Below, piece by piece: positions 9,192 to 33,319 of a DNA stretch of 64,000 nucleotides. Location: sequence record NC_049383.1; one strand, 5' to 3'. Below the pieces are notes generated by a model. That model did not search any database and was not told the DNA's origin. It saw nothing but the letters and a program-made list of their open reading frames with translations. The position numbers and the translations under genes were made by a program. Numbering within the stretch: the stretch's first letter is position 1; the number at the start of each line of letters is the position of its first letter.

Positions 9192-9377
9192 TTATTTCTT
9201 CTTCTTTTTATTTGGTTTACTATCCAAATCAGAACCTGTTTTTGAATCTATGGTATCAGTAACATTAGATGATATATCACCATTTGTTACAGAACCCATA
9301 CCATCAATACCATCAGGTGTACTAGCGAACTCATTTTCACTTATCTTCTCTTCTAAGTATATACTAATCTTCTTCAT
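9192..9377 (-). CDS. small protein with capsid-targeting-like N-terminus (61 aa)
   Basis: MKKISIYLEEKISE start; low-complexity acidic body with Lys tail; followed by a terminator. Confidence 0.65.
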   Translation of the reverse strand: MKKISIYLEEKISENEFASTPDGIDGMGSVTNGDISSNVTDTIDSKTGSDLDSKPNKKKKK

Positions 9378-10227
9378 TCGTCTCAGGTTCTATAACTTTA
9401 ACTTCTATTTTACTACCAGTTTCATCAATTTCTTCCTTATCTTCTAACTCATCTTCATTAACTGTTGTATTTATTTGTTTATCACCTTGACCATCTGAAA
9501 TATAATAAGGAACTTCTTCACTCTTATTCATTATAGCAGGTAAAACTTTAGTTCTTTCTTTACCATCAGCAGTTGTTGTCTTAATGTTTAAATTCATCAT
9601 TTCACCATCCTTAATATATGAATCTAAATCATCAGTTTTAACCAAATCTTTTAAATCATCTTTACGTACAATATCAGAATCATTTAGAGCCTCATTTACA
9701 GCATCATTTACAGCATCATTTAAACCATCATTTAAACCATCATTTAAACCATCACCTATTTTAGATTTTAATGCTTTTGTGAAATCAAGTTCTCCTGCAT
9801 ATGCTTTAATTGTGAATGGAATCATGATTGCAAAAGGAATAGCTATTATCATACTAGACCAATTTACAGCATCAGTTCCCCAAACAGAAATAACATATTT
9901 ATTAGCCCAGTAATAAACGTTTGCGTATATTTCGAATGCAAAGAAAAGCCATACTAACTGTTTTACAACCTTTGAACCACCATTTGAAGCTCGGATTGTA
10001 AAGTAAAGTAATGCACCACTTAAACCGAATGCACCAATTGTCGTTTGAATTAGGTTCAACCAAAAGATATCAAATGATGATAATTGAAAAAATAAGAATC
10101 CATTATGGAAAGTTTGAGTGATTACACCTAATGTTGCTAAAATAAATGCTGTTCCAGTAGAACCGAATTTTTCAGCAAATTCAATGACCTTTAATAAAGG
10201 TACTTTGTTTGTCTGTTGTTTACTCAT
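9364..10227 (-). CDS. multi-pass membrane protein with acidic C-terminal tail (287 aa)
   Basis: About four hydrophobic segments in the first 145 aa; DGLN/DAVN repeats; acidic tail. Confidence 0.75.
   Translation of the reverse strand: MSKQQTNKVPLLKVIEFAEKFGSTGTAFILATLGVITQTFHNGFLFFQLSSFDIFWLNLIQTTIGAFGLSGALLYFTIRASNGGSKVVKQLVWLFFAFEIYANVYYWANKYVISVWGTDAVNWSSMIIAIPFAIMIPFTIKAYAGELDFTKALKSKIGDGLNDGLNDGLNDAVNDAVNEALNDSDIVRKDDLKDLVKTDDLDSYIKDGEMMNLNIKTTTADGKERTKVLPAIMNKSEEVPYYISDGQGDKQINTTVNEDELEDKEEIDETGSKIEVKVIEPETNEED
9680..9751. repeat. in-frame 12-bp tandem repeat, 6 units
   Basis: tcatttagagcc, tcatttacagca x2, tcatttaaacca x3; encodes GLNDGLNDGLNDAVNDAVNEALND. Confidence 0.9.
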
Positions 10228-10266
10228 GTTTGAAAAATGTTTAAAAAATGTTATGTAAAATTGATT

Positions 10267-11220
10267 TTAAGCGTATATAGAGTAATTTTTTTCCCAAGAT
10301 GGTATATAGATATCAACATTACTAGAAAAGTCTCTTAAAACGAATGGTAGAGCTTCTCGTAAAACATCATCTTTATCCATTAGGATTGTCATATTAGTAT
10401 CTTTTAACTTCCTTACAAGTCTATCACTCGATGAAAAAGAATCTTGAATCATCTGAATAGTATCTTCTAGTGAATAATCTAATACATTACTAAATATCAC
10501 TTGTTTATATTTATATATCTTTTTATCCTTAATTACATCATCAAATACTCTACTTGACCCATAAACAGGTGTAGGCATTATTAAAACTTTATGATTTGGG
10601 TTTTTAGACATATAATCTATTAAATCTTTATACTGAGGGCAAATCTTTTGTGATAGTATATCTGAATAAACTTTTTTAGTTAATTCATCCTCATGATGTA
10701 GATTTTCTTTAAACTCAGTAAAAGTCAATGCATTAGTCATACATTGGTCAACATCAGTTACTTTAAAATCTTCATCTGAATCAACAATATCATAAAAACT
10801 ATAATCATCACTTATTCTAGATTCTGATGTATAATCATCGGAATCATTGAATGCGTCCATAATAATCGAATCATTAGTTCCCATTTGCATTTCTTTAGTT
10901 TCGCGATATGTTGTACCATAGCATGAACTAAATCTAAATTCAACATTACCATCCAATAATTCGTTAGTAATCTCTTTTAGAATATCAACATCTGATGGTT
11001 TTGATTTAGCATCCATTACTAAAATAAAATCATCGAACATTGAACGACTATAATAGTATCTAAATAGTGACAATGCTCTAAAAACAGATGGGCATGATAA
11101 AATAGATGGTGTTTCATCTGAAAATTTATAATCCTTGTGTATTGCTATATAAGCAAATGTTTTTGTATTCATATAAAAATATTTTTTTGCAAATAACGTG
11201 ATTAATTTTTGATTATACAA
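10267..11220 (-). CDS. hypothetical protein (317 aa)
   Basis: ORF track; real start may be the second Met (MNTKTF). Confidence 0.75.
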   Translation of the reverse strand: MYNQKLITLFAKKYFYMNTKTFAYIAIHKDYKFSDETPSILSCPSVFRALSLFRYYYSRSMFDDFILVMDAKSKPSDVDILKEITNELLDGNVEFRFSSCYGTTYRETKEMQMGTNDSIIMDAFNDSDDYTSESRISDDYSFYDIVDSDEDFKVTDVDQCMTNALTFTEFKENLHHEDELTKKVYSDILSQKICPQYKDLIDYMSKNPNHKVLIMPTPVYGSSRVFDDVIKDKKIYKYKQVIFSNVLDYSLEDTIQMIQDSFSSSDRLVRKLKDTNMTILMDKDDVLREALPFVLRDFSSNVDIYIPSWEKNYSIYA

Positions 11221-11222
11221 AT

Positions 11223-11257
11223 AAAGTGACTAAATTTTAAAAATCTAGCCACTTTTT
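11223..11257 (-). terminator. intrinsic terminator
   Basis: Imperfect inverted repeat whose two mismatches become G.U pairs on the minus strand (aaagtggctag/ttagtcacttt). Confidence 0.55.
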
Positions 11258-11293
11258 GTAAAATTATAAACAATAATATAATCAACTTATTCT

Positions 11294-11986
11294 TTATACT
11301 ACTTGTTCCGCATCTGTTACTACAACTTCTTCTTCACCTTCATGCTTTTTTATCGGTGCATCAGCATCAACCAATCCCAACTCTAAAATATACTTTTTGA
11401 TTTTACCTTCAATCATGTTCGCGGCTTCTGCAATCATTTTCACCTTAACATCTAAATACCAAACTGACGCGTAAACAGATTTCATGTTTTCACGAATGAT
11501 TTTTAATTCTTTCGCTTCTTTTAATGTTTTGAAAGTTAATTTACTCCATAATTCAGATACTTTTCTAACTTGCTCTAAAGAAAGTGTAATAGCATCTTTT
11601 TCAGGGTCAACACCATCAAACATTTCAGAAATAGTAATGAAATTATCTAAATTCTCAACACCTTTAGAAAATGATTGGTAGTAACGAACATCTTCACATA
11701 AAACCTTTAATGCTTTTAACGGTAAACCTCTTAATAAAATCGGAATAGATTCTGTTGCAACCTTCTCAGAATTATATACCTTATATAATTCATTAATAAC
11801 ATTATCCTTTCCATGTTCTTTAATAAAATCAACACCTGCCATTGGTTCGAAAACCTCTCTTACTTCATCTTCAATATGTTGAATAAGTTCGTTCGCATAC
11901 TCTTGTGTTAATTCTCTTGTTACTTCAATTGCTCCTGTTTCTGCATTAATAACTGGCTCTAAAACAGCCTTTGCTTCTGTACTCAT
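11294..11986 (-). CDS. hypothetical helical protein (230 aa)
   Basis: ORF track; codon usage resembles the highly expressed genes. Confidence 0.8.
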   Translation of the reverse strand: MSTEAKAVLEPVINAETGAIEVTRELTQEYANELIQHIEDEVREVFEPMAGVDFIKEHGKDNVINELYKVYNSEKVATESIPILLRGLPLKALKVLCEDVRYYQSFSKGVENLDNFITISEMFDGVDPEKDAITLSLEQVRKVSELWSKLTFKTLKEAKELKIIRENMKSVYASVWYLDVKVKMIAEAANMIEGKIKKYILELGLVDADAPIKKHEGEEEVVVTDAEQVV

Positions 11987-12596: not shown

Positions 12597-12609
12597 AATT
12601 TGTTAATTT

Positions 12610-13445: not shown

Positions 13446-13865
13446 CTATTTATCCATAGAGTTTAAATCAATATCCATTCTCCTAGATAAATCATTCACT
13501 AATATGTTTCTATATTGTGAAATTAGCTTCTCGAAATAGTATTGTTCGCCAAAACCGAAATATGTTATAATTACATCGAATATTTCAACAGAATCAATCC
13601 TATTTGAAAAAGCACCATACAAATCACCAAAAATTTGATTTGCAACTAATGGGTTTTTTATCCTAATTTGTTCACTTCGTAAAGTCTCTATATAAGGTGA
13701 ATATCTATAGTCATTCTGTTGTAAATATTCGAATAAAAATGATGTATCACTTTTATCAGAAAAATCACCAACAGTATTACTAATCTCTATATGTGTTGAT
13801 TTATCAAAAGTTTCCGTTATATGTGATAAATCTATGCCATCATCAACTAATTGTTTATGTCTCAT
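13446..13865 (-). CDS. hypothetical protein, weakly gp33-like late transcription co-activator
   Basis: C-terminal SVEIFDVIITYF...EKLISQYRNILVNDL loosely resembles gp33; near the gp32-like gene; weak call. Confidence 0.3.
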   Translation of the reverse strand: MRHKQLVDDGIDLSHITETFDKSTHIEISNTVGDFSDKSDTSFLFEYLQQNDYRYSPYIETLRSEQIRIKNPLVANQIFGDLYGAFSNRIDSVEIFDVIITYFGFGEQYYFEKLISQYRNILVNDLSRRMDIDLNSMDK

Positions 13866-13921
13866 GAAAAAATGTCTTTTTAATTACTATATTAATATAA
13901 CAATTAAAAAGACATTTTACC

Positions 13922-15517
13922 TTATTCTTTTGGTCGCATACATCTTGGAATCTCATTCATGAAATCCGAACGACCTTTAATATCAATCTTCTTTTCTCTT
14001 ACTGGGAATTTTCGTTTTTCATAGATATGCTTCCTTTCAGTTAAGTGTTTAGCATAACTATTTATTCGACTACCACCCCAATTATGATTATGTTTCCTAA
14101 ATAAAACAGAGAAATCATTTACAATAGCTTTTAACTTCTTTGGATGTAATCTCAATACACGACCTATAGACTGTCTAACCCTAGTTACAGAAATAGTAGA
14201 ATCCACTAAATTAATACCACCTAATAACTTAATAGAAACACCAGTTGAAAGGATTTCATACATTGAATATAAATAACAACCTTCATTATTTTTCATGTAA
14301 TTAAGAATGTAATCGCGTTCTTTACGTTTCGTATCACCATGAATGATGAAAACCTTCTTATCAGAACCGATACTATCTAAATACTCCTGCATTTCCGAAG
14401 CCATCTTTTTAAGAAAATCCTTTGTATTAAATAATAATACTTGATTGTAATCACCTTGCGCAACAATCCTATTCACTAATTGACGATACATAGGGATTCC
14501 TTGGATATAGTTTGATTCAAATAAAAATCTCCCTTGCTCATTTTCGTTATCAGGATGCGTGTAAAAGTCTCTACATAAATTATAGTCACCAACAAATTGA
14601 AAAGAATTTATCTCACATGGTGTAATTGTACCTTTTTCTTTCAAGTCTTCAACATACAATTTAATCAAAATAGAACCCAAATATGCATTCTCTGTAACTG
14701 CTTTATACTCGTCATAATTAGACGAACCATTATCTTTTGTTTCGAAAGTACCACTTAATGAAATAATATTTTCACAATTACTACTTAATAACATAGCATT
14801 AAGAACCTTTTGGGTTGAATTATTTTGAACTTTGTGTGCCTCATCAACTATAATAGTTCCGAATTGATTAAACCAAGATAACGGTTTCTTAACAACAGTA
14901 TCAATATTTCCAACAACAACTGTAGAATTTTCATACTCTACACCACCACCCATAACCTCGTCACAAATTGTCAATTCATGCGCACTTGAATAATCTTTAA
15001 AATCTTGTGGTAACTGACGAACTAATTCTGTTCTAGGAACTAAAACTAAAACTTTTAAGTTTCTTTTAGCTTCTTCTTTTTGCCACCTTTCTAGTAAATA
15101 GCGACAGTATAAATAAATTATGAATGACTTACCTGCCGAGGTGTCTAAAAGTAGCCTACAATGTCTATAATTTATTGCAATTTTCAATGCATTAAATTGA
15201 TAGTCATATGGTAAGAAATTCAAATCATCTTTTGATTGTAACCATTCAGTCAACTCATCTGTTTTAACTGTATTTTTAAGGTATTCTCCTATGTTGGTTA
15301 TCTCTACATTATACCCCATCTTTTTAAGACCCAAAACAGATATATAGAACCCTGCGGGTATTAAGTTACCATTGTGAAGAAATTTACAATATTCATCTGA
15401 TTTCTTTTCATATGAATATCGTTTTCCTGTTGTCATTGTTGATAGTTGGTCATATTCTAAAGATGTTGCTTTTATAATTTTTAGAAACTTAAAGTTTCGA
15501 ACAAATTTTAATTTCAT
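13922..15517 (-). CDS. uvsW: UvsW-like SF2 DNA helicase
   Basis: PYDYQ Q-motif, Walker A TSAGKS, Walker B IVDEAH, motif VI QSIGRVLR; 531 aa. Confidence 0.9.
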   Translation of the reverse strand: MKLKFVRNFKFLKIIKATSLEYDQLSTMTTGKRYSYEKKSDEYCKFLHNGNLIPAGFYISVLGLKKMGYNVEITNIGEYLKNTVKTDELTEWLQSKDDLNFLPYDYQFNALKIAINYRHCRLLLDTSAGKSFIIYLYCRYLLERWQKEEAKRNLKVLVLVPRTELVRQLPQDFKDYSSAHELTICDEVMGGGVEYENSTVVVGNIDTVVKKPLSWFNQFGTIIVDEAHKVQNNSTQKVLNAMLLSSNCENIISLSGTFETKDNGSSNYDEYKAVTENAYLGSILIKLYVEDLKEKGTITPCEINSFQFVGDYNLCRDFYTHPDNENEQGRFLFESNYIQGIPMYRQLVNRIVAQGDYNQVLLFNTKDFLKKMASEMQEYLDSIGSDKKVFIIHGDTKRKERDYILNYMKNNEGCYLYSMYEILSTGVSIKLLGGINLVDSTISVTRVRQSIGRVLRLHPKKLKAIVNDFSVLFRKHNHNWGGSRINSYAKHLTERKHIYEKRKFPVREKKIDIKGRSDFMNEIPRCMRPKE

Positions 15518-18074: not shown

Positions 18075-18464
18075 TTAGATATGTTTATTTTTTTCCTTAA
18101 AAAGTTTATAAACATTATCTAAATATTCTATAGTTAACTTTTCTTTCTTAACCAATCTATTGGCTACGAATAAAGCCATGATTCTAGTTGAGTAAGTAAA
18201 AATACTTGAATCCATCATTCTAAGTTTACAATAAATTGCTATAACTTCTTCTAAAGGAGTCCAATAGTAAATTCTTACTTGATGATAAGGTAACTTTAAA
18301 AAGTCTATAATATCACTATACCAATCAAATTTCTTGTATAGTGGTCTTTGCGCTTGGTATAATCCGAATACCAAAATAGCTATGAAAGCTAATTTACCTA
18401 AAATTACATACATTGTGTATGGTAGGTAATCTAATATATTGTTAATTAAGTTAATTATTTCCAT
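18075..18464 (-). CDS. hypothetical protein with N-terminal hydrophobic helix (129 aa)
   Basis: MYVILGKLAFIAILVFGLY segment. Confidence 0.7.
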   Translation of the reverse strand: MEIINLINNILDYLPYTMYVILGKLAFIAILVFGLYQAQRPLYKKFDWYSDIIDFLKLPYHQVRIYYWTPLEEVIAIYCKLRMMDSSIFTYSTRIMALFVANRLVKKEKLTIEYLDNVYKLFKEKNKHI

Positions 18465-18934
18465 TCAAAATCTATATTAAAAAATTCATCTTCATTTTCG
18501 TTTATATCAGCGTTATGAGTTCCTTTCATTTTATTAAGAATCTCAATCATTTTTCTACATGGTAGGTTTGTTCTATAAACCTTAACCTCATGGTCGGGAT
18601 TTGATAAAAGAACTGATAAAACACCATGTGTTCCATCAGCAATTCCATAATCTTTTGAAACTAAATATGTTCTATCTAATCCAATTCCTTTTTTAGCCAT
18701 CTTTTTAACCTTTTCCATGTTAACTTCACATTGAATAGGTTTAAGTTTACTTACAGGAACTTTCATTTCCTTAATCTTATATTTCCTAGCAAAATGCATT
18801 AGGAACTGTGGGAAATTTTCTTTAGGTAATTGGGGCATTTTTATACGCTTAATACCTTGACCTTTTTTAAGCCAATCATCAACGTTGAAATCTCCAACTT
18901 TGAGTGCTTCTGTTAAATATTGTATTACATCCAT
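18455..18934 (-). CDS. ParB/Sulfiredoxin-like domain protein
   Basis: VPVSKLKPIQ...YLVSKDYGIADGTHG...VKVY follows the ParB N-terminal fold pattern with a degenerate DGHHR motif. Confidence 0.6.
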   Translation of the reverse strand: MDVIQYLTEALKVGDFNVDDWLKKGQGIKRIKMPQLPKENFPQFLMHFARKYKIKEMKVPVSKLKPIQCEVNMEKVKKMAKKGIGLDRTYLVSKDYGIADGTHGVLSVLLSNPDHEVKVYRTNLPCRKMIEILNKMKGTHNADINENEDEFFNIDFEWK

Positions 18935-19523: not shown

Positions 19524-19896
19524 ATAAATTAGTATTTGTGTTTTTCATTATTAATTTCTTAACACTTGTAAAAAATGAATCAATATACTTCAATAATATA
19601 GGATTTTGTTTAAATCTATTATCGAATCGTTCAGGTTTATGTTTATTACAAAACATTGATTTACCAGTTAGCTTATCTATATCGACATAAATACGCGTAT
19701 GACATTCAAAACAACGCCAAGGTAAAAGACCATTACTCTCTTTATGTTTATCAACACAAAGGTTTTGATGTGACCATGAACCAATATTTCTAACAATATC
19801 TTTTCTTATCTCATCAACATCTGTTAACCTTTTTTTGTAATAAACTCTAAATGGTTTAGTCGCAAACCTTTCCTCGTTATCTTCCTTTTGACTCAT
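19516..19896 (-). CDS. hypothetical protein, possible Zn-binding (126 aa)
   Basis: CFECH...FCNKH. Confidence 0.65.
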   Translation of the reverse strand: MSQKEDNEERFATKPFRVYYKKRLTDVDEIRKDIVRNIGSWSHQNLCVDKHKESNGLLPWRCFECHTRIYVDIDKLTGKSMFCNKHKPERFDNRFKQNPILLKYIDSFFTSVKKLIMKNTNTNLYG

Positions 19897-20257
19897 TTAT
19901 ATACTTGTTAATCTTGTTCTTAAAATCAGTACTACTTGTATAATAACCTTTTTCATATTTGTTATTTTCATTCTCATAAACATCATCTGTTGAATTTAAA
20001 ATAATAATAAAATCATAAAACGATTCAGATTCATTTATTGAGAATTGAAGTGTATCTAATTTACTATTAACAGTTAACATACTTTTTATACCGTTATTTC
20101 TAGTACTAAATGTGACAACCTCATCACCGAAAGTTTCACCAACTAATTTTGAAATAGATTCAGAAATCTTTTCACATAGGTTTAACCCTATTTGTATATC
20201 AGAAGTTGATGGATGTGAAATCCGTTCAGCTTTAAAGTATTCTAATATTCCTTTCAT
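19877..20257 (-). CDS. hypothetical protein with capsid-targeting-like N-terminus (126 aa)
   Basis: MKGILEYFKAE start; INES motifs. Confidence 0.7.
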   Translation of the reverse strand: MKGILEYFKAERISHPSTSDIQIGLNLCEKISESISKLVGETFGDEVVTFSTRNNGIKSMLTVNSKLDTLQFSINESESFYDFIIILNSTDDVYENENNKYEKGYYTSSTDFKNKINKYINESKGR

Positions 20258-20722: not shown

Positions 20723-23500
20723 ATGGCATTAGAGGAAAGTTTAAATACGGGGAGCAACAGAAGTTCCTCAATTGATTACATATTTAATAATAAAGATGAA
20801 CATACTATAGAAGATGTTTATAAAGCCGTTGTTGGTGATAACGAAACATTATACGAAATAACTAAAAAGTCTGATAAAAAATTGGATATGATAGTTTCTT
20901 CTATTTCCGCTAGTAATTCATATTTAGCAAGTATCGAAGCACATTTAGCTATGGGTCAAAACTTCGATTCTATGGAAGCATTTAAACATGGTGCAATACT
21001 TAGTGTTGATTTAACAGCCGAGGGTGATGCAAAAGATTTTATGCAATCTCTTACAAAATTGGCTGAATTAGATGATATTCAATTAATATCTGTAGCAAAT
21101 GGCTTAGATAATATTGCATTATCACTAGATAAGATATTAGAAAAAGATTATTCAAAATCAAAGCCAATATTAACAACCATTGAAGCAATGGTTACGGGTC
21201 TTGTAAAACTTAATGAATCAATACCAAATTTCAAAATGATTGGTGGTATCGCGGCAGGTCTAGCACTTTTAGGTTTATCAATAGCAGGTTTTACAGCTTT
21301 AGTTGGTTTTGATTCAATCTTATTACTGGGTGCAACTTTTGGTGGATTGGCTTTAGTATCACATTTATTAAATGGTGTTAAGACAGATTTATTAAACGCA
21401 TCATTTGGAATTGCTACAATGGGTCTTTCTATTTGGGCTTTCACAGAACTTGTAAACCCATCAATGTTATTCGAATTTAGTGCATCACTTTTAGGATTAG
21501 GTACAGCAATAGCAATTTATGACGGTGCTTTCGGTAAGAGTTCTATGTCAGTTAGTAAATACCTTTTACAATTAGCTCTAGGTGTTGGCGGTCTTGGGTT
21601 GGCATTAATGCCTTACGATAATGTTGAATGGTCTTCTATTGCAAAAGCTTCTACAGCAATTACAGGTGTTGGTCTTGCAGGTTCTTTACTTAAAAAATCA
21701 AATCCTAAAGACGCTTTAACACTTGGAGCATTAGCATTATCAACAGGTGTTTTAGGTTTATCATTGATGTCTTTTAAAGATATAGCTATAGAAGATGTGA
21801 CTACAGCATTAATTGCTATGACTGGAATGGTTGGTGTTGGATATTTAGCGGGAAAATTAGGTAAAAACTCACTTATAGGTGCTTTAGCACTTGGTGGTAT
21901 AGGTCTTTCAATGATTGCTATAGCAAAAGGTTTAGATTCTATTAAAGGTTTAGGTCTTACATTAGATGATGCAGGTGTTATAGCAGGAACAATTGGATTG
22001 ACGGCAGGGGCTTTTAGTGCTTTGGGTATTCCTGTTGTTGCCGCTCTTATTGGTACTGGTGCTATTGTAGCATTAAGTATGGGTGCAGGTTTAGCAACAT
22101 TATCATGGGGATTGAATAAAGTAGCTACAGTAAACTTAGGTGTTGAACAAGCACAAAACTTCGCTGATAGTGTTATTTTGGTTAAAGATGCTATAGCGCA
22201 AATTGGTGAGAGTGGTGGTTTGACAAGTTTACTTTCGGGTATTGCTCAATCAGCTTTAATAACTGGTGCAACTTTACCACTAGTTTTAGCGGTTAATATG
22301 GTCAATAAAGTGAAAGCACCTAAAGAAGAAACATTAACAGGATTTAGTAATACTGTGATGAGGTTAAAAGATACATTCACACAATTTGGATTCTTAGACC
22401 TTGCTGAACTCGCCGCAGTTACACCAGTTATGCTTTTAATGGCAACAACAACTGTGGCATTAGGTGGTGCTATAAACTTATTCACGAAACTATCAACAAC
22501 AAAGGAAAATGTTGATAGTGCTGTATCTACACTAGATTCTTTCTTAATAGGTATTCATGCATCATTCGCAAAACATGATGATGAAAGTTTTGATGTTCTA
22601 AGAAAGGGTATCGATTCTACTATGAATCTAGGTCTATTACTGAAAAACCTTTCTATGGGTATTAATGAAATTAGTGTTCATATGAAAAATAATACTGATT
22701 TCAAAGGAATAGGTGAAAGTGTTGGTTCAATGTTGATGGCTTTAACAGACCCTTTAGCACAGATTGGAAGTCAAAAAGATAGTATTAGTATTGGTGGTTT
22801 CAATATAACAAATCCTTTTTCAAATAAGGTTGAAAATGGTATTGATGCACTTAGAAATATCGGTTCTGTATTCACTCCATTATCTGATATGGTTAAGATT
22901 TTTGCAAATGATACGGATGGAACATTAGTACAAAAGTTTGGAACAAATATAAGAGGTATTTTAGGAACGTTAAGTGAAGTATTCGTAGAGTTTCAAGATA
23001 CTGAAAATCAAGGAATGGAATTTCTTTATGAGGCTACTGATAACACATCATCATTTATAAAGACTTTAACAGGTGCTAATTATGAGGGTGCTAGTAAGGG
23101 TCTTAAATCTGTTTCAGCATCTACAGTTGTTATGAGAGATTCAATAAATAATATGGATTTGGAAAAGTTGTCTAAATTAAACGATTTATTCCATAATATG
23201 AATATGTTGAATGAGGGTGAAGGAATTGAAAAATTAGTAGAGGCTTTAGGAAATTTTGTTGAAGCATTAATGACAGCAAATAGTTCAACAGTTACTAATA
23301 ACAATAACGAGACAAACAAAACAACTAATAAAACAGAAAAAGGCGAATCTAAAGATATTAAACCTATAAAGGATATGGATGAATTAGCCAACGTTTTATC
23401 TAGTGGTAATACTGATATTGTAGAATCGTTAAGAGAGTTATTAGAATATTTACAAAGTGGTGATTTAACAGCTACTGTAGAAGTAAAAGAAGGTTTTTAA
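20723..23500 (+). CDS. tail tape measure protein (925 aa)
   Basis: Long Ala/Gly/Leu-rich helical central region with hydrophobic repeats, polar ends, late promoter; no other tape measure candidate in the window. Confidence 0.75.
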   Translation: MALEESLNTGSNRSSSIDYIFNNKDEHTIEDVYKAVVGDNETLYEITKKSDKKLDMIVSSISASNSYLASIEAHLAMGQNFDSMEAFKHGAILSVDLTAEGDAKDFMQSLTKLAELDDIQLISVANGLDNIALSLDKILEKDYSKSKPILTTIEAMVTGLVKLNESIPNFKMIGGIAAGLALLGLSIAGFTALVGFDSILLLGATFGGLALVSHLLNGVKTDLLNASFGIATMGLSIWAFTELVNPSMLFEFSASLLGLGTAIAIYDGAFGKSSMSVSKYLLQLALGVGGLGLALMPYDNVEWSSIAKASTAITGVGLAGSLLKKSNPKDALTLGALALSTGVLGLSLMSFKDIAIEDVTTALIAMTGMVGVGYLAGKLGKNSLIGALALGGIGLSMIAIAKGLDSIKGLGLTLDDAGVIAGTIGLTAGAFSALGIPVVAALIGTGAIVALSMGAGLATLSWGLNKVATVNLGVEQAQNFADSVILVKDAIAQIGESGGLTSLLSGIAQSALITGATLPLVLAVNMVNKVKAPKEETLTGFSNTVMRLKDTFTQFGFLDLAELAAVTPVMLLMATTTVALGGAINLFTKLSTTKENVDSAVSTLDSFLIGIHASFAKHDDESFDVLRKGIDSTMNLGLLLKNLSMGINEISVHMKNNTDFKGIGESVGSMLMALTDPLAQIGSQKDSISIGGFNITNPFSNKVENGIDALRNIGSVFTPLSDMVKIFANDTDGTLVQKFGTNIRGILGTLSEVFVEFQDTENQGMEFLYEATDNTSSFIKTLTGANYEGASKGLKSVSASTVVMRDSINNMDLEKLSKLNDLFHNMNMLNEGEGIEKLVEALGNFVEALMTANSSTVTNNNNETNKTTNKTEKGESKDIKPIKDMDELANVLSSGNTDIVESLRELLEYLQSGDLTATVEVKEGF

Positions 23501-23519
23501 TTTTTAAATCGCAAATAAA

Positions 23520-23882
23520 ATGGAAGTAGTAGAATTTATTAAACAACATATACATTATATCCTAGTTTTAGGATATTTTGTATATTTAATGGTTATATTT
23601 AGAAGTAAAGAGTTAAGAAAGAACTTTTTACAAGCACATAAAGAGAAATCCGAGTATAGTTGGACTCGTTTTATGGGTACATTTATAGTTACAACGGCTA
23701 TGGTTATCGCCCTAACATCTTTATTGATGGGTAAAGAAGCTAATGTTACTTTAATTTCTTTAATGTTGGCTACAGCTTTTGGTGGCAAAGTTTTACAGAA
23801 AAGAACAGAAAACGGTGAAAGTATATTTACTTTTACAAAGAATAAAAAAGATAATACAGAAGATGATGAAAATACTAAGTAA
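23520..23882 (+). CDS. putative holin (3 predicted TM helices)
   Basis: Three hydrophobic segments and a charged C-terminal tail; precedes a spanin-like pair. Confidence 0.6.
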   Translation: MEVVEFIKQHIHYILVLGYFVYLMVIFRSKELRKNFLQAHKEKSEYSWTRFMGTFIVTTAMVIALTSLLMGKEANVTLISLMLATAFGGKVLQKRTENGESIFTFTKNKKDNTEDDENTK

Positions 23883-24246
23883 TTTCACAATAAAGGATGT
23901 TCTTTACTTTTTGATACTTTTCGTGATTGGTTATTTTTTATATCAAAACTTAAACGGTGTTGATACTAAATATATGAAATCACTTGAAGACAAAAAAGTA
24001 GAATATCAAAATAGAATCGATTCTTTAAAGAATGTCGTTTCTAAAGGTAAGGACTCAATCAAAGTTTTTGATGAGAAGATTAAACGGTATGAAAAAGTAC
24101 TTGTTGAAAAGAATATTAAAATTAAAACTTTAAAGGATGAAATCAAATATAAAAAAGAAGTCATTAATAACAGCGATGTTAGTTTTTCTTATGACATTGT
24201 TTATAAACACCTCGACAGTATCAGCACAACAAATAAGAAAAATTAA
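23863..24246 (+). CDS. i-spanin-like protein (N-terminal TM plus coiled coil)
   Basis: Probable start MMKILSNF at 23863 or 23866 rather than 23779; VLYFLILFVIGYFLY anchor then a Lys/Glu-rich coiled coil. Confidence 0.55.
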   Translation: MMKILSNFTIKDVLYFLILFVIGYFLYQNLNGVDTKYMKSLEDKKVEYQNRIDSLKNVVSKGKDSIKVFDEKIKRYEKVLVEKNIKIKTLKDEIKYKKEVINNSDVSFSYDIVYKHLDSISTTNKKN

Positions 24247-24574
24247 TAAAAACGAATTTGTAATTGATTCATTAGCATTAAAAGATTACGCTACACAAAT
24301 AGAAACGAATAAACGTTTAGAAAAATTAGTTCTTAGATATAGTTCAAAGGTTTTGACTTTGGAAACTTTAGTTGGTGACCTTAAAACACAAAACAAAATG
24401 TATCTAACAAATCAAAATCATTTAGAAAAAATAATTTCAACGAATGAGAAGAAAAATGATGTTGAAAACGAACTAGCAAAAGAGCGTTTGAGATTAACAC
24501 GAAGACAGCGAAACACCGCATATGTTATTACTGGCGCAACTATTATAGTCGCCACAATTTTACTAACAAAATAA
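24137..24574 (+). CDS. spanin-like partner: signal peptide, coiled coil, C-terminal TM
   Basis: KKK n-region, hydrophobic h-region, VSA/QQ cleavage-like site; AYVITGATIIVATILLTK C-terminal anchor; overlaps the upstream gene by 110 nt; no Cys. Confidence 0.5.
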   Translation: MKSNIKKKSLITAMLVFLMTLFINTSTVSAQQIRKINKNEFVIDSLALKDYATQIETNKRLEKLVLRYSSKVLTLETLVGDLKTQNKMYLTNQNHLEKIISTNEKKNDVENELAKERLRLTRRQRNTAYVITGATIIVATILLTK

Positions 24575-27883: not shown

Positions 27884-27891
27884 TATTTATA
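27884..27891 (-). promoter_or_regulatory. T4-like late promoter
   Basis: TATAAATA on the minus strand, 34 nt upstream of ATG 27849. Confidence 0.6.
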
Positions 27892-27913
27892 CTTCGGAAC
27901 TTATTTAACAAAG

Positions 27914-27940
27914 AAAAGTCCATGCTAAACATGGACTTTT
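27914..27940. terminator. intrinsic terminator
   Basis: aaaagtccatg-ctaaa-catggactttt. Confidence 0.8.
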
Positions 27941-27991: not shown

Positions 27992-28780
27992 TTATTTATT
28001 TTCTCTTTTTGCTCTATTATTTAATTGTTCTCTTAACATTGCTTGTTGCTTTTCGAACTCCTTTAAAGTTCCTTGACAATAAACAAATCCTGACTTTACA
28101 TTAAATTCAGCTTTAAATTTATTATAATGTGGTGCTAAAGCCATTAATTTAGCTTTAATTTCCTCACCTTTAAATTCTTCACCCATTTCAATATAAGTAC
28201 TTGCTGAAAAATCAATCATCATCATAACAGCAAACTCTTGAATACTTTCTCTAACCTCTGATGCGAAAGCAGATTCATCACTTTTTTTAATACCTAAAGT
28301 TTTAAGAATCATTTTTTGTGTTTTCTTCTCTAATGATGCATACAATTTATTACTTTCTTCTGTAAACATAGAGGTATAATTTGTCATACCTTCAACTGCA
28401 TCAAAAAGTGGTTGTAATAAGTTTTTTGCTTTTGAATTTCCTTTGAAAACGTGTTGTAATAAAATTCTAGGAGCATCATGAGCATTGTAAATATCACAAT
28501 CTTCATACATAGCTCGCATAGTTTTATCTAAACCAGTTCTCTCAAAAACATCTTTAAATAACTTTACAATAAATACACGTCTTAAATATGGTTCTAGTGT
28601 TTTCAATTGATTGATATCTTTGAAAGCATCTTCCATACCTTCACCAATCATTTTTGTTAATCCCGAATTTTCAATTTCTCCAATACATTCGTTTACTGAA
28701 CTTTCAAAAACAGCATCAACTTTTTTAAAATTTGCAGAACCTTCCAAAGATTCCTTAATATAGTCTCTAATATCTCTCAT
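27992..28780 (-). CDS. putative capsid-internal protein (262 aa)
   Basis: Probable start at 28780 (MRDIRDYIKES), 1 nt after the upstream stop; several xxES motifs. Confidence 0.7.
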   Translation of the reverse strand: MRDIRDYIKESLEGSANFKKVDAVFESSVNECIGEIENSGLTKMIGEGMEDAFKDINQLKTLEPYLRRVFIVKLFKDVFERTGLDKTMRAMYEDCDIYNAHDAPRILLQHVFKGNSKAKNLLQPLFDAVEGMTNYTSMFTEESNKLYASLEKKTQKMILKTLGIKKSDESAFASEVRESIQEFAVMMMIDFSASTYIEMGEEFKGEEIKAKLMALAPHYNKFKAEFNVKSGFVYCQGTLKEFEKQQAMLREQLNNRAKRENK

Positions 28781-28781
28781 T

Positions 28782-29594
28782 TTATTTATCCTCTTTAAAT
28801 CTTTCAATTAATCTTAATGTTTCGAATGATTCACCAGTACCCAATTTACCATGTGTATTGAAATCATCTGCAACCTCTTGTGCAACCTTTTTAGTTTTCC
28901 ACGCATTTAAAGCGTGTTCAGGTTTATATTTTTCACTATCATCAAAAATATCAATGATAACAAACTCGTTCCTATGGGTATCAAAAACACCAAAACCTTT
29001 AGGTTCATAATATCCAATCTTTTCACCTTTAGTGTTATAAGCTTGAACCTTAACACCACTCATTTTTTTGGCAACAAATCGTTTTCTATCTTTTGCACTT
29101 TCCAACATATCTAAAAGCTCATAACCGTTTACATTTCTATAAGCCTCATTTTGATAATATGTTTTTGTTGCATCGAACTCAAAAACATTTGAGTTTTCAT
29201 AGTTCTCAGCTATTTTAATAGCTTCTGAGCGACTTTCAGCGACCAAGTAAGGTAAATCTATACCATTTTCATTTTTAATCGTTATAACGTGTGATTTTGC
29301 TTCCAAAATAGCATCATTAATTGATTCTACAATATTGATATTGTAACCTCTTACATACATAAAGAAATCCTTTTTCGTAAGGTCTGTATAAACCATATAC
29401 TCAAATTCCTTATGATAATACTTAGCGATTACCTCTTTTTTGTTTTTAAGATAAACTAAATCATGATATTGACCTTCTTCATCTTTAGCCTCAACAGCTT
29501 TAACACCTTTTTCCTTAACAACTCTTTTAAGAAATAAATCCCAATCATATGTGTCAACAGGGAAGCTATATTTTAAAATATTTGATTTTTTCAT
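28782..29594 (-). CDS. hypothetical protein, possibly capsid-internal (270 aa)
   Basis: Internal IVES, ILEA and MLES motifs that may separate small domains; late operon. Confidence 0.7.
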   Translation of the reverse strand: MKKSNILKYSFPVDTYDWDLFLKRVVKEKGVKAVEAKDEEGQYHDLVYLKNKKEVIAKYYHKEFEYMVYTDLTKKDFFMYVRGYNINIVESINDAILEAKSHVITIKNENGIDLPYLVAESRSEAIKIAENYENSNVFEFDATKTYYQNEAYRNVNGYELLDMLESAKDRKRFVAKKMSGVKVQAYNTKGEKIGYYEPKGFGVFDTHRNEFVIIDIFDDSEKYKPEHALNAWKTKKVAQEVADDFNTHGKLGTGESFETLRLIERFKEDK

Positions 29595-30397
29595 TATATG
29601 CGTATTTTATCGAAGTTAATTAATGGTACTTTTAATCCGTTTGATTTGGCTAAAGACCTTAGTTTCTTTTGGTATCTGTTTTTGAAAGTAGCCACAAGTG
29701 TTGCTAATTCTTTATCATTTTTAGCAATCTTCATAAGTTGCGCCTTTTCGTCTCTCGCCTTTTTAGCTCTACCAGTTAGCTTTTTTGGTCTTGCACCCTC
29801 TGTAACTTCTTCCATTTCACATTCACAGTCTTCCATTTTACAAATTTCACAATCCATTTCCTCTCCTTCCATTACTGCCTTGCCTGATTTCACCATAATA
29901 TCATTTGATAACATACCTTTAATTACTATATCTAAAAGCTCATCATCAGATAAGTCATTTAAAGAATTATCTATACCTAAAGTTGTGTCTAAACCTTTAA
30001 CGTATTTTGCGATACTATATATAGTTGCGAAAATCAATCTATCAGTTTTTAAGTGCTTTTTAAACACTTTATGAACATTATCATTTTTCGGTTTTTTAAT
30101 AGCTCTTAACTCATCCATCATTTCGGGATATGCTAAATCATATACCCCTGATTTAAGGAAGTTTAAGAAAAGACCGTCTGTAAACACCATTCTCATGGAT
30201 GCTTCTTTAACAACTTTTATTAATTTCTGACTCTCTTCTTCTGAATATCTCTCGGAAATAGCGTCTAGAATCCGTTGTGGTTGTTCACCATTTGAAAAGT
30301 CTTCCATAATAGCTACAGACTCTTCAATACTAAATTTATTTTCCAACTCAGCACCTTTTAATGCTTTGTTGAAATTAACATATGTTTTTAAACTCAT
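29594..30397 (-). CDS. hypothetical protein, possibly capsid-internal (267 aa)
   Basis: IEES and VTEG motifs, CEICKMEDCEC segment, basic C-terminal helix; late operon. Confidence 0.7.
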   Translation of the reverse strand: MSLKTYVNFNKALKGAELENKFSIEESVAIMEDFSNGEQPQRILDAISERYSEEESQKLIKVVKEASMRMVFTDGLFLNFLKSGVYDLAYPEMMDELRAIKKPKNDNVHKVFKKHLKTDRLIFATIYSIAKYVKGLDTTLGIDNSLNDLSDDELLDIVIKGMLSNDIMVKSGKAVMEGEEMDCEICKMEDCECEMEEVTEGARPKKLTGRAKKARDEKAQLMKIAKNDKELATLVATFKNRYQKKLRSLAKSNGLKVPLINFDKIRI

Positions 30398-30399
30398 TT

Positions 30400-30738
30400 T
30401 TATTTCAATTTTTTGAACTTTGATAATTTCGATTCTTCGCGCCTCATTGTAGTAACAAGATAACTTATAACACTCTGTAATTTACCTCTTACAGATACAC
30501 TTCTAAAATAAACCACGAACTCATCATCACCGACTTGTTCTATTAAATATGGTAAACTTATTGCGATAGTTACTGTTGAAATCTTAACAACCACCGAAGC
30601 GAATTTCCCCGAAAAAGTAAAAACATCATATTGAACAAAACGAGCGTGTAATCTAGACTTTAACTCAGAAAAAATTTTATTTGAGAAGTCATTTTTCTCG
30701 AACATTTCATCATCCGATTTTACCTTATAGTTGTTCAT
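30400..30738 (-). CDS. hypothetical protein (112 aa)
   Basis: ORF track; operon packing. Confidence 0.7.
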   Translation of the reverse strand: MNNYKVKSDDEMFEKNDFSNKIFSELKSRLHARFVQYDVFTFSGKFASVVVKISTVTIAISLPYLIEQVGDDEFVVYFRSVSVRGKLQSVISYLVTTMRREESKLSKFKKLK

Positions 30739-30739
30739 G

Positions 30740-30994
30740 TTATTTGTGTATTGTTAATTTAAGTGTTTTATCATCATAGGTTAATTCATAATCTGAATCA
30801 GTAATTTCATCAGCAATTGACATTGCAACTTCTTCGGAAGTTGCATACATTCCACCATCCTTACCTTTCTTGAAATCTTCACCTTTTTTGAAACCTAGAC
30901 CTTTAAGAACTTCTTTCGCATCTTTAAAAGAAAGTTCTTTTGAAGATTCCGAAATTTCTAACTCTTCTTTAATGTAATGTGTTATGTCTCGCAT
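30740..30994 (-). CDS. putative capsid-internal protein (84 aa)
   Basis: MRDITHYIKEELEISES start; first gene after TATAAATA. Confidence 0.7.
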   Translation of the reverse strand: MRDITHYIKEELEISESSKELSFKDAKEVLKGLGFKKGEDFKKGKDGGMYATSEEVAMSIADEITDSDYELTYDDKTLKLTIHK

Positions 30995-31017: not shown

Positions 31018-31025
31018 TATTTATA
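31018..31025 (-). promoter_or_regulatory. T4-like late promoter
   Basis: TATAAATA on the minus strand, 23 nt upstream of ATG 30994. Confidence 0.65.
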
Positions 31026-31036
31026 GTTTCAACTTA

Positions 31037-31074: not shown

Positions 31075-31076
31075 CA

Positions 31077-31298
31077 TTACTTTTTCCTACCAAATAAACG
31101 AGGCATTTTCCATTTTCTACTTTGTTGCTGTCTTTGTTGTTCCTCATAAGACTTTTTCTTTGCTTTAAGTTCCTCACTAACAGACTCAAAATACATACGA
31201 AATTTATAATATGGCATTTCAAGTAATTCAGATGGTTGAATACCTCTCGCTTTGTTTATTTCAATCTCACTTTTATAATAAGAAGTTGTCGTCTTCAA
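31077..31298 (-). CDS. gp51-like baseplate hub assembly protein
   Basis: SYYKSEIEINKARGIQPSELLEMPYYKFRMYF resembles gp51 (NYY.....LM......LSELE.M.PWE); probable TTG start at 31298 overlapping the gp26-like stop. Confidence 0.6.
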   Translation of the reverse strand: MKTTTSYYKSEIEINKARGIQPSELLEMPYYKFRMYFESVSEELKAKKKSYEEQQRQQQSRKWKMPRLFGRKK

Positions 31299-32193
31299 TC
31301 TTATCAAAGACAATAGTTTTGATTCCGTAGGGAAACCGCATTGGTACACCCTCCGAGTGACCACATTTTTCACATACGTTAATAATTTCATTCTTATTAG
31401 TCAATGAAACCTTTTCAGCTAATTTAGCCATATTGATTACATCTTCTTTTGCTAATTCTCTAAATGCATGGAAACAATCTTCCCAATTCTTACTATCACC
31501 TAAATGATTTCTCATGAATGGGAATAACTTAATAAATGCTTTTAATTGATGTTGTTCGATATCGTCTCTTTTAGAAATCATAAATTCCATGATTTCTGAA
31601 TTTTCTTTGATTGTTAAAGGGAAATAACCGTATGTTCTTTTCCCATCACTTGATTTAACATCAATATTAAATTTCCCATCTTTTTCATCATAATACTTAT
31701 CAATTAATGATTCTGTAAATGATAAATTTTGAGGTATAATTTTAATAGTTTGTGTATGACCACATACCTTTCCATCTGCAATATTTTCACATTTATGTTC
31801 GAATGTTAAATCTGTTTTCAAATCAGAATATGTCCTTGCAATAAGTACTAAAGCAAATCTATCAAACTGATAAATAAAAGACGATGTATCTTTAACCTCA
31901 ACATTTCCAACTCTAACTTTAACAACTTCTGAAACTAAGTATTTAAAAGCTTGGTCAACTTCCAAAGGGTTATTTTCATTTAAAGAAGTGAAATAAACAA
32001 CTTCTTTTGTTGAAAATGGTCTAATAGAAATTTGAGTTCCTTTTGGATAAAATCTACCACCATATCCTAATAAATCCATTATGATATCAAGGTGACCACT
32101 TTCTGCTATGTTTTTAGGTGTTAATTGTTTAACTCCATTTTCTTGTTTAGTCACTTCCCCAAGTGCTGAACTATAATCATTTTTTTGCTCCAT
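31273..32193 (-). CDS. gp26-like baseplate hub subunit
   Basis: IRPFSTKEV motif, two CxxC-type pairs (HKC...VCGH, CEKCGH); between the tail tube and the gp51-like gene. Confidence 0.7.
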   Translation of the reverse strand: MEQKNDYSSALGEVTKQENGVKQLTPKNIAESGHLDIIMDLLGYGGRFYPKGTQISIRPFSTKEVVYFTSLNENNPLEVDQAFKYLVSEVVKVRVGNVEVKDTSSFIYQFDRFALVLIARTYSDLKTDLTFEHKCENIADGKVCGHTQTIKIIPQNLSFTESLIDKYYDEKDGKFNIDVKSSDGKRTYGYFPLTIKENSEIMEFMISKRDDIEQHQLKAFIKLFPFMRNHLGDSKNWEDCFHAFRELAKEDVINMAKLAEKVSLTNKNEIINVCEKCGHSEGVPMRFPYGIKTIVFDKIEDDNFLL

Positions 32194-32238
32194 TTTAAAC
32201 TAATTTATTTGTTTACTTTAATATAACAATATAAAACA

Positions 32239-32271
32239 AAAAATTGGTAACATTTTTTGTTACCAATTTTT
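32239..32271. terminator. intrinsic terminator
   Basis: aaaaattggtaaca-ttttt-tgttaccaattttt downstream of the tail tube gene. Confidence 0.8.
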
Positions 32272-32276
32272 ATATA

Positions 32277-32819
32277 TTATTGTTCAGAGGTTTCTACACC
32301 ATTACCGATAACAGTAAATGCTAATTGGATAGGTTCATGGTTCGTGATATCATAATCATCGATACCCGAAATATCACCTTTTACCCACGCATCTTTTAAA
32401 GTTTTCGTAGAAATAGTGTTACCTTTTTTGTCTAAACGCTCAACGATTAAAGTTGCCATGTATTCAGAAGCTGTACCATATTCACCTGTTTCTGAGTTAT
32501 ATGCCGCTTTATGCCATTCTCTAATCTTTTTATAAACGTAATTTTGATTTGTTTTATTTAAGTTTAACGACATTGTTATCTCAATTTCTTGGGTGTTATC
32601 AACATCAGTAGAAGCATAATTTCTTTTAGCTCCAAAAGACTGTTGCTGAACATTTTCTACACCAACATCACGAAATCCTGTAACAGAAATTGCGTGTTCC
32701 GTTAATCTTTCATCAGGTGTGATATTGTCAGGTAACAAAAAAGTTAATCTAAAAAGTGAGTTTAAAACAGGTTCATACTTTAATCTACCTGCTTCGCTAT
32801 TTTCAATATGTGCTAACAT
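32277..32819 (-). CDS. tail tube protein (gp19-like)
   Basis: 180 aa; YKKIREWHKAAYNSETG...Y...IVERLDKKG...LKDAW pattern of T4-type tube proteins; follows the sheath gene. Confidence 0.85.
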   Translation of the reverse strand: MLAHIENSEAGRLKYEPVLNSLFRLTFLLPDNITPDERLTEHAISVTGFRDVGVENVQQQSFGAKRNYASTDVDNTQEIEITMSLNLNKTNQNYVYKKIREWHKAAYNSETGEYGTASEYMATLIVERLDKKGNTISTKTLKDAWVKGDISGIDDYDITNHEPIQLAFTVIGNGVETSEQ

Positions 32820-32833
32820 TGTTATAATTGTTT

Positions 32834-33319
32834 TTAAGTTTGTACATCATCAACAAATTCTCTCGAAATTATAATGAATTGTTGAATTAAATTTTTGATT
32901 TGAAAATCGTTTGAATATCCTTGCATCGTATCTCCATCGAATTTCTTAAATACTTTATAAAAGTTTTTCCATTCGTCAGTTCTACGTATAATTGTTGCTA
33001 ATTTTTTACCCTTCATAAAATCATCATCGAAATATTCAAAAGCAAAATCTTTTGGATTCTTTGAATAATCATCGAGTAAATAAACATAAATCGAACTTAT
33101 TGCCTTTTCAGCTATCTTGAAAAGCTTATCTGTTTCCTCTCGAATAGCTCTCGAATTTGGTGTTGATTTATTGTTTCTATGCCATTGAATCTCAACGGAG
33201 TTAAAATAATCAGCATATTTACAAAGTATTGTAAAGTTTTCAATCACATCATCTTTAACCAAACTTTCATTTATATTCGATTCCAATAAAGGATTATAAT
33301 AACTTATTAATGACTTCAT
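32834..33319 (-). CDS. hypothetical protein, capsid-targeting-like N-terminus (161 aa)
   Basis: MKSLISYYNPLLESNINES; inserted between sheath and tube genes. Confidence 0.7.
   Translation of the reverse strand: MKSLISYYNPLLESNINESLVKDDVIENFTILCKYADYFNSVEIQWHRNNKSTPNSRAIREETDKLFKIAEKAISSIYVYLLDDYSKNPKDFAFEYFDDDFMKGKKLATIIRRTDEWKNFYKVFKKFDGDTMQGYSNDFQIKNLIQQFIIISREFVDDVQT

Follow-up and report, generated by a model that had tools for sequence, protein, structure and literature searches.

A stretch of 64,000 nucleotides (nt) from Tenacibaculum phage pT24 (identical to bases 62001-126000 of LC168164 / NC_049383; hereafter the window) encodes several small proteins that have little in common beyond the way in which they begin. 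An earlier note on this DNA had likened that beginning to the capsid-targeting sequence of T4 internal proteins, and had suggested that the proteins are packaged in the phage head and injected with the DNA. This raises the question of whether the resemblance is real and, if so, what the shared N-terminus does and which proteins carry it. We consider it likely that the shared N-terminus, hereafter the leader, is a T4-type prohead (capsid) targeting leader which is removed by a protease of the gp21 family.

pT24 is a giant lytic myovirus of marine Bacteroidota (Flavobacteriaceae) with a genome of 234,670 base pairs (bp) and 29% G+C, belonging to the genus Kungbxnavirus, and nearly all genes in the window lie on the minus strand. 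The whole genome was fetched and 329 open reading frames (ORFs) were called, amounting to 73,428 residues. pT24 has been described as most similar to Sphingomonas phage PAU (PMC5502841). A further comparison was made with PTm1, a jumbo phage of the same host genus, Tenacibaculum, and of similar AT-richness. Two closer relatives, both uncultured, were found through homologues of the pT24 protein BPT24_113 and of the tube protein, i.e., relative 1, a 231,974-bp metagenome-assembled contig (assembly GCA_020630575.1), and relative 2, a 14.7-kb contig (run SRR25010645). Both are syntenic with pT24, with protein identities of 30-74%. A query of IMG/VR for close relatives with the sheath protein returned pT24 itself only. 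Coordinates below are those of the window unless they are called record coordinates.

A shared start on unrelated proteins

The six N-termini quoted in the earlier note are all encoded on the minus strand at the positions it gave, namely 9377, 18934, 20257, 28780, 30994 and 33319. Its strict pattern, M-(K/R)-x-I-x-x-Y-(I/L)-x-E, holds at 9377, 28780 and 30994, while the N-termini at 18934, 20257 and 33319 are looser variants. The genes concerned are as follows (lengths in amino acids, aa).

9192..9377, minus strand: BPT24_102, 61 aa, strict leader at residues 1-10 (nt 9348-9377); acidic body, Lys-rich tail, no family match
18455..18934, minus strand: BPT24_113, 159 aa, leader-like residues 1-9 (nt 18908-18934), then a domain of predicted ParB-N/sulfiredoxin fold
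19877..20257, minus strand: BPT24_116, 126 aa, loose leader at residues 1-11 (nt 20225-20257); heads a tightly packed run of genes that extends to BPT24_112
27992..28780, minus strand: BPT24_126, 262 aa from ATG 28780, strict leader at residues 1-10 (nt 28751-28780); last gene of a five-gene unit
30740..30994, minus strand: BPT24_130, 84 aa, strict leader at residues 1-10 (nt 30965-30994), further I-x-E-S site ending at residue 16; opens the same unit
32834..33319, minus strand: BPT24_134, 161 aa, loose leader (nt 33266-33319), [IL]-x-E-S sites ending at residues 13 and 18; between the sheath and tube genes

Over the whole genome the strict pattern was seen four times, whereas position-specific residue frequencies predict about 0.02 occurrences. 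Its core, Y-[IL]-x-E, occurs 66 times in the 73,428 residues of the pT24 proteome. The Tyr of this core stands at residue 6, 7 or 8 in 4, 6 and 2 proteins respectively, against 0.30 expected per position, i.e., in 12 proteins against 0.9 expected (Poisson P = 2e-10). In an unbiased clustering of all N-terminal 12-mers, the leader family formed the largest cluster, with 23 similar pairs compared to 2 among control 12-mers taken from after internal Met residues. The earlier note had proposed a search of the whole proteome with a profile of the leader; run in leave-one-out fashion, this placed 9 of the 25 best sites at N-terminal residue 6-7.

The family is not confined to 9192-33319, carriers of the leader occurring genome-wide. 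There are at least 14, of 61-262 aa, spread over the whole genome with starts at record coordinates 6585, 43075, 71192, 80455, 81877, 89992, 92740, 132122, 132904, 148875, 172914, 173362, 179416 and 179862. When these 14 are aligned on the Tyr, which is present in all of them (14/14), the position three residues before it holds Ile in ten, Val in two and Leu in two. The residue directly after the Tyr is Leu (6), Ile (4), Phe (2), Tyr (1) or Val (1), and the third residue after it is Glu in ten carriers, with Ala (2), Asn (1) and Pro (1) in the remainder.

Such a pattern could arise by chance or as a by-product of AT-rich codon bias, of a nucleotide element at translation starts or of paralogy. 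Lys, Ile, Tyr, Leu and Glu are all common in a genome of 29% G+C, and three of the six quoted examples are loose. Against this stand the excess of the motif at N-termini and the internal-Met controls, which have no such cluster. Furthermore, the same motif and clustering analyses applied to the N-termini of PTm1 gave no enrichment and no such cluster and, as PTm1 is of similar composition, composition is not the cause. Paralogy was ruled out: in an all-against-all BLAST comparison the carriers, which the earlier note had rightly called unrelated, showed no similarity past the first 16-21 residues, and their cargo folds differ. An element acting at the DNA or RNA level was also ruled out, as the conserved leader residues are encoded by differing codons and even the most similar pair of carriers differs at several synonymous sites. 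We therefore rejected chance and by-product explanations, which the motif excess, controls, codons and BLAST results together make extremely improbable. Given that the similarity ends at 16-21 residues and that the codons differ, the leader behaves as a modular tag at the protein level.

The tag is also recognisable in close relatives, where the orthologues of BPT24_102, BPT24_113, BPT24_116, BPT24_126, BPT24_130 and BPT24_134 all retain this type of N-terminus; the leader pattern persists between orthologues while its residues drift. In relative 1, the orthologue of BPT24_102 keeps aromatic-L-x-E-K-[IL]-x-E, displaced by two residues, and that of BPT24_116 is near-identical over the first 15 residues, with 41% identity over the remainder. 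The BPT24_130 orthologues of relatives 1 and 2 retain I-x-x-aromatic-I-x-E-E and a later I-x-E-[SA]. The orthologues of BPT24_126 in PTm1 (ORF-188) and relative 1 have the same opening pattern, with His replacing Tyr. For BPT24_134, the loosest of the quoted cases, the orthologue in relative 2 begins with a well-fitting leader and that in relative 1 has L-N-E-S at residues 13-16.

The prohead protease, its sites and the likeness to T4

If the leader is removed in the prohead, the phage should encode a suitable protease whose sites are found in other head proteins. The two genes that bear on this are adjacent.

50436..52019, minus strand: BPT24_140, 527 aa, prohead protease (gp21/S77 domain at residues 27-157, nt 51549-51941) with a scaffold-like C-terminal part joined to it
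48616..50388, minus strand: major capsid protein of the gp23 family (Pfam Gp23), 590 aa, predicted propeptide at residues 1-60 (nt 50209-50388)

BPT24_140 matches Pfam Peptidase_S77 (PF03420) with 31.9 bits against a cutoff of 27, and S80 more weakly. It aligns with T4 gp21 (BLASTP E = 1e-5) in the stretches E-H-P and S-S-R-G, which hold the catalytic His and Ser, respectively, of gp21. A PDB sequence search with the protease returned nothing meaningful. Over its C-terminal 350 residues the protein resembles a fused scaffold. BPT24_140 contains 21 [IL]-x-E sites where 7.7 are expected (P = 4e-5), which ranks it first among the 329 proteins. The capsid protein has I-x-E-S sites ending at residues 22, 43 and 60, and only two [IL]-x-E sites in its other 530 residues. 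The counts in the BPT24_140 tail and in capsid residues 1-60 thus bear out the claim that the x-x-E-S sites of the leaders recur in the scaffold and the capsid propeptide.

The capsid sites also agree with processing data from PAU. In an alignment of the capsid N-termini of pT24, relative 2, PAU and PTm1, E43 and E60 (pT24 numbering) are invariant, the latter within [ILV]-x-E followed by [S/N](-G)-Y. N-terminal sequencing showed that the PAU capsid protein is shortened from 585 to 520 residues (Hua et al. 2017, PMC5646251). The mature PAU protein, being 64-65 residues shorter, is cut within one residue of L62-M63-E64. T4 gp23 has L-T-E-A at residues 63-66 (T4 record), which we take to be its maturation cut. 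As judged from these sequences, cleavage after [I/L]-x-E is well supported as the probable specificity of the protease in this lineage.

Leaders of the same kind and length are found in PAU, whose protease is 41% identical to that of pT24 over the N-terminal domain and whose capsid propeptide can be aligned to the pT24 one and shares its invariant Glu residues. Here 19 proteins form one tight N-terminal cluster. By column, these 19 have Met in 19, Lys in 19, Thr in 15, Leu in 13 or Ile in 6, two variable residues, Leu in 18, Tyr in 14 or Phe in 5, and Glu in 19, followed at position 10 by a small residue in 16 of 19 (Ala 8, Ser 7, Gly 1). Among PAU N-termini, 26 have [IL]-x-E starting at residue 7 where 4.6 are expected (P = 4e-12). 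The label 'internal capsid protein' is given to five PAU proteins in GenBank JQ362498, and four of the five belong to the leader cluster (hypergeometric P = 6e-5), as does the 'scaffolding' protein gp152. Many PAU leader genes flank the portal, protease, scaffold and capsid genes. Inner densities beneath the vertices have been seen in empty PAU capsids (PMC5646251). PAU differs from pT24 in several respects: its leader is far more uniform and has L-[Y/F]-E at residues 7-9, a register one residue shorter than Y-[I/L]-x-E at 7-10 in pT24; its protease (gp151) and scaffold (gp152) are separate genes; none of its carrier bodies is orthologous to those of pT24; and its ParB/Srx protein lacks a leader and is encoded next to the portal gene.

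The earlier comparison with the T4 leader MKTYQEFIAE holds for the layout over ten residues, which pT24, IPII, IPIII and Alt have in common. From the T4 record (NC_000866, genes translated), IPII and IPIII start M-K-T-Y-Q-E-F-I-A-E and Alt starts M-E-L-I-T-E-L-F-D-E, while IPI starts M-K-T-F-K-E-F and has a longer leader. Common to T4, pT24 and PAU is a start with Met, frequently followed by Lys, after which position 4 is hydrophobic, position 7 aromatic or hydrophobic, position 8 Ile, Leu or Phe and position 10 Glu. The pT24 layout agrees at positions 1, 2, 4, 7, 8 and 10 with IPII and IPIII and at 1, 4, 7, 8 and 10 with Alt, ten residues being too short for significance, and as sequences go common descent and convergence of the pT24 and T4 leaders are indistinguishable.

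The T4 internal head proteins all join the scaffolding core via a leader of 10-20 residues; gp21 cuts C-terminal to Glu, and the proteins form a diverse set that counters host defences (PMC3012670, PMC5694885). pT24 resembles this system in several ways: proteins with nothing else in common begin with a short leader, the protease belongs to the same family, [I/L]-x-E sites also mark the capsid propeptide and scaffold, the carriers include an ADP-ribosyltransferase, which Alt also is, and the carrier genes are scattered among non-structural genes, like the T4 ip genes. However, pT24 belongs to a separate lineage (Kungbxnavirus), is a jumbo phage of 235 kb and has hosts in the phylum Bacteroidota. 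The Tyr that is invariant in its leader is Phe or Leu in T4, its protease is fused to a scaffold-like domain, its cargo is unrelated to the T4 internal proteins, and it has about 14 or more carriers (19 in PAU), compared to about 4-6 in T4.

A propeptide system like that of phiKZ-like phages (phiKZ, 201phi2-1, SPN3US) was also considered. Their protease is related, as Pfam S80 also matches BPT24_140, cleavage likewise follows Glu, and a role in directing proteins into the prohead has been proposed for their propeptides (PMC5694885). However, the phiKZ-type sites are A/S/G-x-E and the propeptides often exceed 100 residues (PMC5694885), whereas pT24 and PAU have Ile or Leu as the third residue before the cut in leaders, capsid propeptide and most scaffold sites, and their leaders are 9-16 residues long. 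With Ile or Leu in place of a small residue and with short leaders, a phiKZ-type system was ruled out for pT24, and pT24 and PAU are therefore jumbo phages with a T4-style leader.

The N-terminal helix might instead be a tag for a process away from the head, e.g., recognition by a chaperone or an AAA+ translocase, membrane association or regulated degradation. pT24 does encode a BCS1-like AAA+ protein, BPT24_286 (record coordinates 226024-227508), and a part in the movement of folded proteins has been proposed for proteins of this type in jumbo phages (PMC7824862); moreover, the head location of the pT24 carriers is itself deduced. We nevertheless regard this as very unlikely, given that the very motif with which the tag ends has its sites concentrated in the scaffold-like domain and in the capsid propeptide, that the tag's layout is that of the T4 leaders, and that in PAU the tag is found on the scaffold and on annotated internal capsid proteins, with many of the genes flanking head genes.

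Under the preferred reading, i.e., a prohead targeting leader, we infer docking, cleavage, retention in the virion, ejection and any role against host defence in the following way. The first 9-10 residues or so would form a short amphipathic helix, with an aliphatic residue three positions before the invariant Tyr, Ile or Leu after it and Glu three positions after it, and this helix would dock the protein onto the scaffolding core during prohead assembly. BPT24_140 would then cut after the Glu of [I/L]-x-E, in some carriers also at a second site about 4-8 residues further on, and would likewise trim the capsid propeptide and break up its scaffold-like domain. The mature cargo would remain in the head with the DNA, and at least the enzymatic cargoes, i.e., the ParB/Srx-fold protein, the ART-PolyVal ADP-ribosyltransferase (ART) and the SprT-like protease, would probably enter the host with it.

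Other genes of the window belong to the same T4-type head module context.

54332..56083, minus strand: portal, T4 gp20-like (Pfam Portal_T4, E = 6e-93)
elsewhere in the window: genes for a gp2-like DNA end protector, the large terminase, the sheath and the tube

Between the portal and the protease lies a 578-aa gene (52446-54182) which has no leader and matches phrog_1745, 'DNA transfer protein' (deposited as 'A1-like protein'); its product may be another head-resident or ejection protein. A 3229-aa ORF, annotated 'chlorovirus glyco repeat domain-containing', occupies 38772-48461 between the terminase-adjacent gene and the capsid gene. Its counterpart in relative 1 is also long (2967 residues, cut by the end of the locus), and relative 2 has only a 254-aa gene there.

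Cargo behind the leader and the five-gene unit

The earlier note had found no cargo domain recognisable, which does not hold for BPT24_113 nor for two proteins encoded outside the window. An exhaustive search with BPT24_113 gave 725 relatives, with homology starting after residue 10-25, i.e., past the leader. Its AlphaFold2 (AF2) model, built on a 45-sequence alignment, has a predicted local distance difference test (pLDDT) score of 89.3, and the top Foldseek matches of this model in the PDB are all ParB-N, Noc or Srx proteins (probability ~1, template modelling (TM) score ~0.4 over ~90 residues). The leader appears in the model as a separate, less confident helix at residues 3-11. In the Asp-Gly-x-His motif of the family, D100 and H103 are invariant, and the residue after the Gly is Thr in pT24 and His in most members. 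Of 45 family members, 4 give matches to Pfam ParBc_2 and ParB_N, all of them weak, and a PDB sequence search with a three-sequence profile (BPT24_113 and its PAU and PTm1 homologues) gave nothing meaningful. By its model, the BPT24_113 cargo is a predicted ParB-N/sulfiredoxin fold.

The same domain is also found inside proteins of 500-1750 aa together with NUDIX, ART, ART-PolyVal, SNF2 and GNAT domains. Stand-alone homologues in other phages in many cases have leaders of the T4 kind, and others begin directly at the domain; the PAU and PTm1 homologues adjoin the portal gene. Outside the window, BPT24_156 combines a leader with ART-PolyVal (E = 3e-20), and BPT24_155, the gene before it, encodes a SprT-like peptidase with a leader-like start. 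At record coordinates 132122-134008 a SprT-like peptidase and two ART-PolyVal paralogues are consecutive, with leader-type N-termini on the first two and not on the third, and taken together these three genes resemble a polyvalent protein whose parts have become genes of their own. PMC7824862, citing Iyer et al. 2017, describes polyvalent proteins that contain domains of this kind as being injected together with the phage DNA. pT24 has the same domain repertoire, i.e., ART-PolyVal, a ParB/Srx-like module and a SprT-like peptidase; however, its domains are separate small proteins, each with a leader or leader-like N-terminus, rather than parts of one giant polypeptide.

For the other carriers, PHROGs, Pfam and PDB sequence searches gave no recognisable family, and PHROGs and Pfam gave most carriers no named function. 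PDB sequence searches with BPT24_134, BPT24_116, BPT24_128 and BPT24_127 returned nothing meaningful, and BPT24_134 had no family match either.

These cargoes bear on a further alternative, in which the leader does target the prohead core but the carriers are mainly parts for core or scaffold assembly that are degraded or expelled at maturation and not delivered. The leader of the PAU scaffolding protein gp152 would suit this, and the T4 core proteins gp67, gp68 and gp22 are also substrates of gp21 (PMC5694885). A number of pT24 carriers are small acidic proteins whose fold is not recognisable, and BPT24_134 is encoded among tail genes. However, the ART-PolyVal, SprT-like and ParB/Srx folds of three carriers are enzyme folds of a kind typically seen in delivered effectors, four of the PAU leader proteins are labelled internal capsid proteins, and most carriers, their leader aside, show no enrichment of [IL]-x-E, unlike the scaffold-like domain. 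We therefore regard a mainly structural role as unlikely.

Several observations weigh against a packaging leader and the delivery of its carriers. Residues of the leader are not better conserved between orthologues than other N-termini (41% identity over the first 14 residues, compared to 38%). Several pT24 carriers are loose variants, with the Glu shifted by one or with Phe, Tyr or Val after the Tyr. PTm1, whose protease is of the same family, had been expected to have the leaders as well; this was not so, as it has two or three carriers at most, these being the only orthologues that keep the leader. In PAU, gp70 is labelled an internal capsid protein and has no leader, and 15 leader proteins are without that label. 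Literature searches found no virion proteome of pT24, nor any paper describing the PAU internal capsid proteins. Finally, the pT24 carriers are scattered among genes for replication and nucleotide metabolism; however, the T4 ip genes likewise lie among early and metabolic genes (T4 record), and the scatter is therefore no argument against the model. As for the PAU labels, with only 4 of the 19 leader proteins labelled and one labelled protein without a leader, they were probably not derived from the motif itself.

The earlier note had singled out the five-gene unit at 27992-30994 as a late operon of packaged proteins. The three genes between BPT24_130 and BPT24_126, and two nucleotide elements at its ends, are as follows.

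31018..31025, minus strand: TATAAATA, a candidate promoter element for the five-gene unit, 23 nt 5' of the start codon of BPT24_130
30400..30738, minus strand: BPT24_129, 112 aa, without leader
29594..30397, minus strand: BPT24_128, 267 aa, conserved variant N-terminus M-S-L-x-x-aromatic; I-E-E-S stretch near residues 24-27
28782..29594, minus strand: BPT24_127, 270 aa, without leader
27907..27940, minus strand: hairpin with a T-rich tail, just 3' of the BPT24_126 stop

From 30994 to 27992 the genes overlap or sit no more than 2 bases apart. The idea of a packaged set is upheld only in part: the first and last genes have the leader and the third (29594-30397) has its conserved variant, but 28782-29594 and 30400-30738 have none in any of the three phages. 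The C-terminal part of BPT24_128 is paralogous to the carrier at record coordinate 172914.

The leader of BPT24_126 depends on its start codon. The deposited start is TTG 28807, which overlaps the upstream gene by 26 nt, and ATG 28780 is internal to the deposited ORF. From the sequence, ATG 28780 is more likely to be the better start, because it stands one base past the upstream stop and because the orthologues in the close relative and PTm1 start at the equivalent Met. In relative 1 (locus 13627-14344) the BPT24_126 orthologue is two adjacent ORFs with one break. A word-indexed search of 5.8 billion proteins with BPT24_126 found only itself, and its AF2 single-sequence model was unusable (pLDDT 38).

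Upstream of the unit, [C/T]ATAAATA is kept 25 and 31 nt 5' of the orthologous units in relatives 1 and 2, respectively. Either this sequence or TATAAATA occurs 8-40 nt before many start codons in the genome, including TATAAATA 25 nt 5' of BPT24_116. Within 120 nt, TATAAATA precedes 24 pT24 genes, among them five carriers, BPT24_125 and the genes for the terminase, the gp2-like protein and a 1478-aa protein. There is an enrichment ahead of start codons and ahead of carriers (P = 0.0025 for carriers); genome-wide the octamer is not over-represented, with 89 occurrences against roughly 118 expected from base composition by our own estimate. A further copy lies at 27884-27891. We take TATAAATA to be identical to the T4 late promoter motif, and its role as a T4-late-type promoter element is offered as a lead only. 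Sigma-70-type promoter matches around the unit were no commoner than in shuffled sequence. The label 'late operon' is plausible. The hairpin at 27907..27940 was read directly from the sequence, as the consensus scanner did not list it, and is likely to be the terminator that closes the unit.

The window has two further features. Directly 3' of the tube gene, at 32239-32271, lies an inverted repeat of 14 bp without mismatch, flanked on either side by T and A runs, which is likely to be a bidirectional terminator. The largest plus-strand island in the minus-strand array, at 20723-24574, encodes a 925-aa Gly/Ala/Leu-rich protein followed by three small membrane-like ORFs. The 925-aa protein looks multi-pass membrane-like or tape-measure-like. 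The island is conserved in relative 1 (60% identity) and gave no family match.

A proposed portable head tag in jumbo phages of Bacteroidota

Phage proteins that are carried in the head and delivered with the DNA act before phage gene expression, and several counter host defences, e.g., T4 IPI* and Alt. Their discovery usually depends on virion proteomics and, to our knowledge, almost nothing is known of the early infection biology of Bacteroidota phages. The most likely picture is that a mechanism known from T4 operates here in a new lineage and on new cargo. By analogy with T4, the leader probably defines a genome-wide candidate packaged set of at least 14 proteins in pT24, some of which are probably injected. 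A sequence tag of this kind would allow candidate injected proteins to be listed from the genome, i.e., at least 14 for pT24 and 19 for PAU. The result also places a short T4-style leader, and not a long phiKZ-style propeptide, in a jumbo-phage lineage far from the T-even phages, and links this leader to domains otherwise known from polyvalent proteins.

Tentatively, and as a possibility rather than an expectation, we suggest that in the PAU- and pT24-like jumbo phages of Bacteroidota one portable tag loads a large and fast-changing set of 15-20 small head proteins, which are injected as a kit for take-over and anti-defence in the first minute of infection. If this is true, a polyvalent protein has in effect been split into tagged pieces, including an ADP-ribosyltransferase, a SprT-like protease, a ParB/Srx NTPase or nuclease and many proteins without known relatives, and the tag would be a predictor of injected effectors, from sequence alone, in any phage with a protease of the gp21 family.

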